Below the pieces are notes generated by a model. It searched no databases, was not told the origin of the DNA, and saw nothing but the letters and a program-made list of their open reading frames with translations. A stretch of DNA of 63,224 nucleotides, counting the filler, from Octopus bimaculoides (taxonomy: Eukaryota): NCBI RefSeq assembly GCF_001194135.2. It is 6 parts of 6 records of this genome, joined end to end, with 100 filler letters (N's around TTAATTAATTAA, not from the genome) between each part and the next. Parts side by side here need not be neighbours in the genome. Positions count along the whole stretch, not along the records: positions 15,542 to 44,313 come from NC_068989.1; 5 more parts are not named here. The stretch is one strand, 5' to 3'. The position numbers were made by a program, and so were the translations under genes. Shown here in pieces: positions 32,101-35,100 of this stretch. The first letter of the stretch is position 1. Each line of letters opens with the position of its first letter.

Positions 32101-35100
32101 CACAGATTTGCTTGTCAATTGTTTGACCTTAACCAGTTGAGCTTGTCCCTTGGTGGCTGACAATATGTGCATCTCTGATCATGAGCAGTGGTGGGGCACA
32201 TCATAACCAAGTGTTGAGAGGAATTCTTTGGGGTATAAATAATTCACCTCTCGAAACATTCAACATCCTTAAACAACCCTTATTCAGTGACTTTTTGAGC
32301 AAGACAGGCTACTTGACCCGAAGAAAATTCTAACTAGGTTCCACCTGCAAGTTTATGTGCTGTTTATCTTGATATGAGATCACCATGTTGCGTACACATG
32401 GTTGTGATGCCTGGTGTACCATAATTAGATGTGTAGACATGATGGGTATATTGTGCTTTGTATATTTGTACCCCAGTGTCACTTTGATGGCATGTGCTGC
32501 TCTCTCACTCAATAATAATAATAAAACAGAAATTATTTCATTTTATATTTTTATATATTTTTCAGTTAAAACCATTCCCATCAGTTTGGTATCGGTTCAT
32601 CTATGTTGGTATAATAATAATAATAATAATGACCATTTCTACTATAGGCATAAGGCCAGCAAGTTCAGGGGAGGGGGTAGAATTCCAGTGTTCAACTGGT
32701 ACTCATTTTATCGACTCCCCCAGAAGTGAATTTAACTGAATTGTTATTGTTTCTTATAGTATACTGTACCCTTTTTGTTCTCTATATCTGCCACTCACTG
32801 CTTGAAGCTTACCAACTTTCTACATTCGGATGCCCGGATCACATTTATATATATGAGCTTCTTTCAGTTTCCATCTTTTAAGTTCGCTTACTTTAGTCTT
32901 TAGCCTGCCAAGACACTTGCCCAAAGTGTCATGCACTGAGATTGAACCCAAAACAATGTGGTTGAGAAGTGAAATTTCTAACCACATAGCTATGCTTATG
33001 CTTATCATTATTCCTGAAGGAAAAGGTGAAATTGGCATGACAAAATGTCTTTGAGCATAGGTTTGCTAATTTTGGGATTTACCTGGGGCCAAACAACAAA
33101 AAACTGAAAGTAAACATCACCACCAACAACAAAAAATATAAAATATACTAATATGACCCTATTGAGGTGGGATGAGGTGGAGGTGGGGGTTCATCAATGT
33201 CCACTAACCCTAATGATTGCAGTACTTCAACCAGTTGAGCTTTCTGTTTCGGAGCCATTCTTGCAAACACTTTACCACGAACCACCAACTGAAAAAAAAT
33301 AAGAAATATAAATATGAATACACGCAAAGACAAATATATGAGCAGCAAAACATGCAATGGTAATTCTTATGACGTGCTAATTAATCTATACAGCAAAAAT
33401 ATCTTCAAACTGAATGTTTATAGTTTTAGAAATGTTATGGCAATCAGAATCACAGTTTGACTACTCATGTCTCTTAGTATATTCTCAATTAATTGCTTAT
33501 CGATGACTCTTGTACTGAGAGAGTTGAAGTTTATAAACTGAGCTGTAAAGATGCACAGGGAGGAAACTCAGTTAAATAACTACAGACTTTAATATTCCTT
33601 TGATGAAACAATAAATACTTAATTATTAGTGACAGAAGCTGTATTAATATAGAAAAAGGTAATATTTATCCCTACTTAAACGTGGGTGTTGTGTTATAAC
33701 AGAATTATTGCAATAATTACCATGACAGAAACTCTGATATGGGCTTTTGGTGCATATAAGCACTCTTCATTTCATCACTAGCAGGGAAAAGAATCACTTG
33801 CTATCGCCACAGCTGAGACTACCAGATCACATGATCGTGAAGTCAGTGATTTTTCAAACACTGTTTCTTTAATATCAGATGATGCTAAATTTGTCTTAGC
33901 ATATGGTTGCCAATGGATATTTGCTACTGATGATGCTCAAGGAAGCAGAAATACATATTTAGCAATGGTATAACTGCTGGTGGACAATTTATGTCAGTTA
34001 CTGATACAGCTCTACGCATCTATAAGAGATTCTTTCTAAAAATGAATACTGCAGTTTTCAGGCTTTCGACAAAATATCTGCTTTAAGTATAAGACACAGA
34101 TTGCTATCTTGAACTAATGTTGCTTCTGTCACTAACAATAAGTTACAAGAAATATATTTGAAATGGTAAGAATTTATCTAAAGAAAGGTGTTATATATCT
34201 AGTGATGTATATATTTCAGATGTATCTTACTTTGGACAGAACATCAGGAAAATAATCCCTGATTAAACTCCATGAATCGCCAGTCACAGCAAAATGGAAA
34301 CGTTGACTGTCTTCATCTATATGAATCGAGGTGGTACTGCCAACCTAAAATAAAAAAGAGAAGGGATGTCATTGTAACAAACATTGGTAATGATAGTTAT
34401 AACCAACATCACAACATAGGATATCACTGATAAAATAGAGAATAATAGTTTCAGACAAAACTAATGCATAAAACAGTATGACTAATAAAATGATGTTACT
34501 CATCAATTTATTTAGTAGATTGGTTTCACTTGATGTAAAATGAGTGAGAATAATGTTCTAATGATGATGATGATGATGATCATCATCATCATTTAACATC
34601 TGTTTTCCATGGCGGTATGGCTTGGATGGTTTGACAGGTCTGGAGAGCCAGCGGCTGCACCAAGCTCCAATCTGATCTGGCAATGTTTCTACAGCTGGAT
34701 GCCCTTCCTAATGCCACATTCAGATGGTGCTTTTTACATGCCACTGACACAGGAGCCAGTCAGGTAGTACTGGCATCAGCCACGTTCACATGGAGCTTTT
34801 TACATGCCATCGGCACAGGAGCCAATCAGGCAGACCTAGCATCAGCCATGTTCGGATGGTGCTTTTTATGTACCACTAGCATTGGAGCCAGTCAAGGGGT
34901 ACTGGCCACAGCTATGATATTGGTTTCACTTGACTCAACACATGGAAACTATTAACTACTTCTAGTTTCTCCCCCTGGCATGTGAGGGTATCCCTTTTCT
35001 GTACATCTTCAGTGTTTTTTGCCACTGTGTATCTACCACATGCAAAAACTATCTTCCTGGTTAACCTTCCTCTGATATTGCTGCACCTCTTATGTGTCCA

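Follow-up and report, generated by a model that had tools for sequence, protein, structure and literature searches.

Antisense copy of an intron-exon junction in ATP13A3

The analysis of a 63,224-nt stretch of Octopus bimaculoides DNA (assembly GCF_001194135.2, six parts joined end to end and hereafter called the window) showed that one intron of the gene ATP13A3 carries an 88-nt antisense copy of an intron-exon junction belonging to the same gene, the junction at the exon which encodes the last transmembrane helix (TM10). Both the copy and its donor lie in the 28.7-kb piece of the window that comes from NC_068989.1 (positions 15,542 to 44,313). Judged from the sequence comparisons, the copy is young and lineage-specific, and with a probability of about one half it arose at the DNA level as a templated insertion, by synthesis-dependent strand annealing (SDSA) or template switching, in which synthesis primed on a retroposon terminus would have overshot into the neighbouring unique sequence.

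The copy is contained in a longer inverted match between two arms, and a repeat search together with the reading of both strands bore out the 167-bp match with 4 mismatches that the original prediction had reported. Arm B (32446-32612, plus strand) is the reverse complement of arm A (20075-20241), and the inverted-repeat listing of the stretch gives the pair as 98% complementary with a spacer of 12,204 nt. The four mismatches are B32454T/A20233G, B32491C/A20196T, B32498T/A20189A and B32555A/A20132G; three of them fall in the repeat part of the arms and one in the unique part, and two of the four correspond to G-U pairs in RNA. Weaker homology extends beyond the arms in the repeat bodies, with segments at 79% and 91%, and the whole inverted homology covers about 550 nt (20075-20631 versus 32063-32612).

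Although the 167-nt unit had been described accurately, alignment to the rest of the genome indicates that it is a composite and not a single duplicated unit, with an informative core of 88 nt, the other 79 nt being ordinary for a repeat family. Nucleotides 1-79 of arm B (32446-32524) represent the 3' terminus and (AAT)4 tail of an abundant 568-bp retroposon. When the 167 nt were searched against the 2.34-Gb genome, over 1,500 candidate places came up, and among the 40 matches that were scored, arms A and B aside, nearly all covered only positions 1-79 at 95-97%, while a few reached approximately position 117 at 87-92% by way of AT-rich sequence. Arms A and B are identical at 76 of 79 positions in this part, as between any two family copies, and the 79-nt part is uninformative on the origin of the copy because other genome copies match it equally well. 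The 88-nt part, in which 41 nt of intron, ending in the AG, are followed by 47 nt of exon, was found in exactly two places in 2.34 Gb, namely A and B. These agree at 87 of 88 positions, in line with the single mismatch in about 90 non-repeat bp noted originally, and the sole difference is an A at 32555 where the donor has G. The flank was significantly more alike than the repeat bodies (Fisher p = 1.8e-5), and the 79-nt and 88-nt parts showed no significant difference in similarity (p = 0.35).

Reading of arm B also gave the order that had been described for it, i.e., the repeat 3' end, the pyrimidine tract, the AG, 47 nt of the TM10 exon and an AAT tail (Table 1). The (AAT)6 at its end directly adjoins the 5' end of another retroposon copy, which starts at 32631 and is listed as a repeat. 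At the distal junction GGTAT is followed by AATAAT in the copy and by TGCCGT in the donor, and 2 nt (AT) fit the repeat register.

Host gene and position of the arms

On the evidence of its exons, the host gene is O. bimaculoides ATP13A3, a P5B ATPase. An ATP13A-type gene had been proposed, and this assignment was confirmed by the concatenated exons, which match human ATP13A2 structures at E = 4e-112, and by tblastn, in which the minus-strand exons match O. bimaculoides ATP13A3 XP_014783642.1 over residues 589-1101, with some misaligned residues where hits overrun the exon ends. A further O. bimaculoides ATP13A3 model is XP_052826874.1. The TM10 exon, whose first 47 nt (20121-20075) form the exonic part of arm A, aligns to human ATP13A2 residues 1066-1094 approximately, that is, to the last transmembrane helix, in agreement with the identity first given to it.

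Copy B is located antisense within a 1,527-nt intron of ATP13A3 (33207-31681). Since this is an intron of the gene to which arm A belongs, both arms are present in one pre-mRNA, and their opposite orientation and separation of 12.2 kb are as originally stated. A distance of 766 nt separates arm B from the acceptor at 31680, which lies downstream of it, and 1,318 nt separate the donor at 21560 from arm A, again downstream; the exons at 31528..31680 and 21560..21646 are the first and the last of the block that the arms bracket.

Table 1. Features of ATP13A3 and of the inverted arms, in positions of the window
Feature	Position	Strand	Basis or remark
TM10 exon donor segment (41 nt of intron 3' end with pyrimidine tract and AG, 47 nt of exon)	20075..20162	-	unique sequence, 2 genome matches
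Recent 88-nt intron-exon junction copy	32525..32612	+	antisense to ATP13A3; 1 difference from donor
Arm B, repeat 3' end	to 32510	+	sequence read
Arm B, (AAT)4AA tail	32511-32524	+	sequence read
Arm B, 41 nt of intron with pyrimidine tract and AG	32525-32565	+	
Arm B, 47 nt of exon	32566-32612	+	
(AAT)6	32613-32630	+	taken as remainder of B's original tail
Repeat copy A	20163..20716	-	full length, consensus 1-568, 85% (blastn); sense to gene
Repeat copy B	32063..32524	+	5'-truncated at consensus position 92 (92-568), 88% (blastn); antisense to gene
TM10 exon	20038..20121	-	84 nt, phase 0, residues 1074-1101; tblastn; AG acceptor, GT donor
TM9 exon	21560..21646	-	residues ~1045-1073; tblastn; GT donor
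Exon downstream of the intron that holds B	31528..31680	-	residues 843-892; tblastn; AG acceptor
Exon upstream of the intron that holds B	33208..33291	-	residues 815-842; tblastn; GT donor

The retroposon family and its two copies

The family consensus, which was built by aligning 18 family copies, is 568 bp long and ends with ...CTCTCTCACTC(AAT)n. The (AAT)4AA tail of copy A ends 41 nt upstream of the TM10 acceptor, the last 79 nt of the copy being 20241-20163, and copy B has inserted into another retroposon, within its (AAT)n tail. Comparison of the two bodies gave 312 matches, 61 mismatches and 27 gap columns, or about 84% identity without gaps, where the original prediction had estimated about 80% by eye. 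The indels are private to each copy: a 13-nt deletion in A is absent in B, and deletions of 11, 6 and 4 nt in B are absent in A. The differences from the consensus which are common to A and B are CpG decay or common family variants. The alignment indicates that the repeat bodies of A and B are independent insertions. Two private substitutions of A, at 20196 and 20189 and located 13-20 nt before the tail, are absent from B, which has one private substitution of its own; that B does not carry the private changes of A fits a copied tract starting at or near the tail, not at 32446.

The retroposon had been labelled a short interspersed nuclear element (SINE). Neither a tRNA gene nor an Rfam family was detected in the full-length repeat copy that was searched, and we use the name provisionally. 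Many family copies are preceded by (AAT)n, and copies tend to cluster in the tails of other (AAT)n-tailed elements. The sequence surroundings of the copies suggest a microsatellite-targeting partner among the long interspersed nuclear elements (LINEs) for the 568-bp retroposon. Copies A and B are the only ones of the family in the 28.7-kb piece. Three incidental copies were seen in approximately 60 kb of flanks of other copies, and only one partial copy in 179 kb of non-N sequence within 200 kb of the neighbouring chromosome. The conservation of the terminus, which was read in the three incidental copies only, amounted to 3, 8 and 12 differences per 68 nt.

Direction and age of the copy

At A, the reading frame of the exon runs on up to the GT donor, and the exon has conserved counterparts in O. 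sinensis, O. vulgaris, Argonauta hians and human; A is taken as the donor for this reason. The same observation ruled out B as the donor. At residue 1084 (20089-20091, minus strand), Phe is encoded in both A and B, and the residue is Leu in O. sinensis, in O. vulgaris and in a more distant cephalopod sequence. It is Ser in Argonauta, and the change to Phe, which lies in the last transmembrane helix, is specific to O. bimaculoides. The presence of Phe in both copies implies that the copying postdates this substitution in the O. bimaculoides lineage, unless the copies were homogenised later.

A check in another species pointed the same way, since the 72-kb Argonauta hians orthologue contains no inverted copy, the only significant match of the 88 nt there being the sense exon. 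The 568-bp family is also absent from this 72-kb orthologue. These results support the original suggestion that the copy is recent. They lend no support to its being selectively maintained, since one mismatch in 88 nt is what would be expected for a young neutral copy, and the comparison gives no sign of selection.

The ATP13A3 gene is 72 kb long in Argonauta hians and 171-175 kb long in O. sinensis and O. vulgaris, and the interval bounded by the VVRGKVF and TM10 exons measures 8.5 kb in Argonauta versus 13.2 kb in O. bimaculoides. The contrast in gene length fits growth of the introns via retroposon insertion.

Origin of the copy

The templated insertion that we favour would have started from two independent (AAT)n-tailed retroposon copies, inverted and 12 kb apart in ATP13A3 introns. 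Following a break or a stalled fork in the (AAT)n tail of copy B, a 3' end bearing B's repeat terminus would have paired with the homologous terminus of A; repair synthesis would then have copied A's tail and continued for 88 nt through the intron end and 47 nt of exon, and the new strand would finally have come off A and been joined, by a 2-nt AT microhomology, to what remained of the (AAT)n tail of B. We infer these steps from the junction anatomy of a single scar. In support of repair, donor and acceptor are in cis, inverted and 12.2 kb apart, and B reads as repeat, an (AAT)4AA identical to the tail of A, the 88 nt and then (AAT)6. The marks of a templated insertion are present in that the repeats are independent and pre-existing, the tract runs from the homology into the donor flank with the donor left intact, and there is microhomology at the distal junction. 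Of the two origins put forward in the original prediction, conversion or template switch between inverted repeats fits the junctions, and plain 3' transduction does not, the bodies being only about 84% identical with indels between them. Repair is known to prefer nearby templates, and retrotransposition is not known to favour sites near its source.

As a control, we considered the 100-nt flanks of six other family copies, four of which lie in other repeats (other hits at no more than 91%) and two of which are single copy. The genome search found a near-identical second copy of the flank for none of the six, which indicates, within this small sample, that flank capture is not routine for this family or for this assembly. 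Inversion through staggered breaks was ruled out, as the exons that the arms enclose follow one another correctly and are properly oriented.

Several observations weigh against the templated insertion or its consequences. No intermediate of break or repair is observable. Target-site duplications would point to reverse transcription, and here such a duplication would be indistinguishable because both junctions lie in an (AAT)n microsatellite. The layout of tail, flank and tail is also the classic signature of 3' transduction. The locus is known from the short-read assembly of one individual of O. bimaculoides only, an assembly with N gaps close by (at 19207-19865 and at 27470-27781), and the captured 88 nt roughly equal what a single read anchored in the repeat terminus would add. 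As for the consequences in RNA, these are predictions from pairing, and the intron of about 1.5 kb that holds B may already be gone when transcription, 12 kb further on, reaches A.

The same end product could have been reached through RNA, although we regard this route as unlikely. In this case the template would have been either ATP13A3 pre-mRNA still unspliced or a transcript reading through copy A. A LINE enzyme acting at a nick in B's tail would have begun reverse transcription 88 nt beyond the tail of A, and the cDNA, 5'-truncated within the tail or terminus of A, would have annealed to the homologous end of B; the outcome would be a truncated 3' transduction landing in the tail of another copy, whose 5' junction would be invisible because the cDNA end annealed to B's homologous terminus. 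The tail-flank-tail order agrees with such a route, as do the clear targeting of (AAT)n by the family, with copies clustering in each other's tails, and the sense orientation of A in the gene, by which the pre-mRNA holds the template. On the other hand, a start 88 nt past the tail with 2-nt pairing is atypical of tail-dependent LINE enzymes; the 88 nt contain T4, T5 and T5 runs which would stop Pol III, making read-through from a SINE promoter unlikely; landing 12 kb from the source in 2.34 Gb has a chance of roughly 1 in 100,000; and neither any further offspring of A's flank in the genome nor any duplicated flank among the six controls was found. Repair is favoured over a retrocopy because of the linkage in cis, the atypical LINE start, the T runs and the absence of any other copy of the flank.

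Simple 3' transduction, by which the whole of B would be a retrotransposed daughter of A that carried along A's 3' flank, has hardly any probability left. The source element is indeed directly upstream of the flank (the tail of A ends at 20163 and the flank runs from 20162 to 20075), and the order of element, tail, flank and new tail expected of offspring is present at B. Yet the alignment of the bodies, about 400 columns long, contains 61 mismatches besides 27 gap columns, while the flank has a single mismatch in its 88 nt; the indels are private to each body, and B is truncated where A is full length. This origin is rejected because the body of B is not a copy of that of A, and it could be upheld only if a third copy had afterwards converted one of the bodies in full.

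A chimera of assembly or gap closing, in which reads of A sharing the 79-nt terminus wrongly extended the contig of B at a long (AAT)n tract, is in our judgement quite improbable. The setting would suit it, given the N gaps (one of them 210 nt from arm A), a terminus common to more than 1,500 candidate places, and a foreign stretch of about one read overhang which ends at a microsatellite, where short-read contigs break. Against it, the overlap at the distal junction is just 2 nt, too short for a normal contig join, and the assembly has no N at this point; the unique part is not identical to that of A, with a difference at 32555; and the six control flanks, none of which is duplicated, show that no such error is systematic in the assembly. 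An 83-aa open reading frame which crosses the B junction gave no candidates in a search of the protein collection.

Predicted duplex and possible effects on RNA

As a by-product of the event, and as far as the sequence of the arms tells, a stretch of 167 nt with 98% complementarity is placed within about 550 nt of approximately 85% complementarity in one pre-mRNA. Being the only copies in the 28.7-kb piece, A and B are each other's sole family partner there. The calculated energy of the cofolded 167-nt arms is -269.6 kcal/mol, in comparison to -20.5 and -22.7 for the single arms, and the corresponding values are -135 for the 88-nt parts alone and -744 kcal/mol for the full arms of about 550 nt. 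A search of the 28.7 kb for inverted pairs of at least 40 nt gave 393 of them, and the potential for double-stranded RNA is widespread in the ATP13A3 pre-mRNA; other examples are 17658-17925 versus 21275-21542 (268 nt, 75%) and 28416-28585 versus 40045-40214 (170 nt, 80%).

Should the duplex form, it would take in the branch region and pyrimidine tract together with the AG and codons 1074-1089, the first 16 of TM10, and it would be a substrate for ADAR. The possible A-to-G recoding events are K1075 to E or R, Y1082C, I1085V, Y1086C and I1089V, and the splice site would be lost if the A of the acceptor were edited. Skipping of the 84-nt TM10 exon would, from its length, keep the frame and remove TM10. 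The arms bracket exons 31680..21560, a geometry which favours back-splicing as a potential only. Splice-site masking, ADAR recoding and back-splicing are all possible in terms of geometry and predicted thermodynamics, and the 12.2-kb spacing with several introns between the arms argues against efficient pairing.

Cephalopods edit their mRNA heavily (PMC8382921, PMC9068888). This fact and the very stable duplex predicted over a 3' splice site and five recodable codons would speak for a functional, selected element, editing-complementary or splice-regulating, whatever its origin. We consider such an element very unlikely, as the copy is lineage-specific with no conservation and its one mismatch in 88 nt equals the neutral expectation, the arms are 12.2 kb apart with at least six exons between them, reports of editing in octopus ATP13A3 were not found in the literature, and both O. 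bimaculoides RefSeq models retain the TM10 exon with its genomic residues. Another proposal, for which we hold little expectation, is that the copy is a newborn, species-specific editing-complementary sequence, only just produced by repair between the inverted retroposons in an animal whose ADARs are very active, and that TM10 is edited (at K1075, Y1082, I1085, Y1086, I1089 and the acceptor AG), skipped or circularised in a measurable fraction of transcripts. The literature search found no paper combining ATP13A3 and octopus; the gene is unmentioned in the supplements of PMC8382921, and the editing analysis of PMC9068888 concerns squid. A 310-aa C-terminal fragment, searched against the protein collection for evidence of editing or skipping, gave no match, and the ATP13A3 protein cluster holds three database models only. 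In general, the copy is most likely a neutral scar with at most a minor effect on RNA.

Comparison with known systems

According to the analysis, the copy is a further example of known processes and does not represent a new type of system. Experiments have demonstrated templated insertions as well as joins through microhomology, usually at other length scales (PMC2943611, PMC11724301), and the characterised templated insertions are mostly about 5-34 bp (PMC11724301). With SDSA, synthesis-dependent microhomology-mediated end joining (MMEJ), and microhomology-mediated break-induced replication (MMBIR) or fork stalling and template switching (FoSTeS), the event in ATP13A3 has in common the priming from existing homology, the one-way tract into the donor flank, the unchanged donor, the 2-nt microhomology at the far junction and the nearby inverted template in cis. 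It differs in that its tract of about 88-114 nt lies between the known ones, which are mostly far shorter or extend over kilobases and more (MMBIR), and in that retroposon termini serve as primers and a trinucleotide tail as the site of resolution, with a mechanism inferred from one scar. Compared with the 3' transductions of L1 and SVA, the source element is likewise directly 5' of the flank and the order of element, tail, flank and second tail is the same, but the body of B was not copied from the source, (AAT)n stands in the place of a poly(A) tail, and the copy is 12 kb from its source.

In its position the copy resembles the editing-complementary sequences of ADAR substrates, such as those of the GluA2 Q/R site and Drosophila syt-1, and the long inverted-repeat hairpins that act as editing inducers, being an intronic complement of an exon of its own pre-mRNA within a more extended duplex of inverted repeats. 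The known editing-complementary sequences are conserved and imperfect, are usually about 0.1 to a few kb away, and have editing demonstrated, whereas the octopus copy, at most a candidate of this kind, is young, near-perfect, 12.2 kb away and upstream. Its likeness to the inverted Alu or SINE pairs involved in circularisation and skipping is that inverted copies are found upstream of exon 31680 and downstream of exon 21560; unlike those pairs, and again as read from the DNA, one arm crosses a splice acceptor into the next exon.

If the copy is real, it would be a cleanly readable scar, a natural experiment in which the donor, the copy and the state before the event could all be inferred, and it would mean that dispersed retroposons with fragile microsatellite tails can prime the transfer of adjoining unique sequence within a gene, in this case of a splice acceptor with half an exon. 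Such transfer makes a sequence complementary to an exon in one step and may serve as raw material for ADAR sites, splice masking and circular RNA, and a SINE-rich, heavily RNA-editing genome such as that of octopus is where events of this type would matter most. Were the editing-complementary interpretation true, it would give a direct view of the birth of cephalopod editing sites. The interest would rise with RNA-level editing or altered splicing at TM10; at present the copy represents a single and probably neutral event.

Other features of the gene

The O. bimaculoides RefSeq proteins carry a 19-residue segment which is encoded at 28794-28738 (minus strand), near the N gap 27470-27781. At the corresponding point a conserved TM5/6 sequence is present elsewhere, reading ACNLTDIEFLYIDLFIILTLGVTF in O. 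sinensis and O. vulgaris and SCNLTDFEFLYIDLCLILTLGVTF in Argonauta. Based on this comparison, the N gap probably conceals the true TM5/6 exon, and the exon annotated at 28738-28794 is probably spurious. An older model, A0A0L8G6U3, omits everything from the TM5/6 point through TM10.

The introns contain further repeats. A decayed non-LTR (long terminal repeat) retrotransposon occupies 34915-37391 on the minus strand, with endonuclease-like and reverse transcriptase open reading frames spread over several frames; it matches Pfam RVT_1 at 1e-17, shows a weak endonuclease match and has a PHD-like zinc finger (PF00628) after the reverse transcriptase. Because its 3' end abuts another repeat, this element is not an apparent partner of the (AAT)n-tailed elements. 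Another repeat family, found at 16868-17093, 22903-23127 and 34732-34891, has internal 66-bp tandem units (TTTTACATGCCAC...GGCCAGTCAG...) and runs of (ATC)n or (ATG)n just before its 5' end, and several of its copies lie in ATP13A3 introns.

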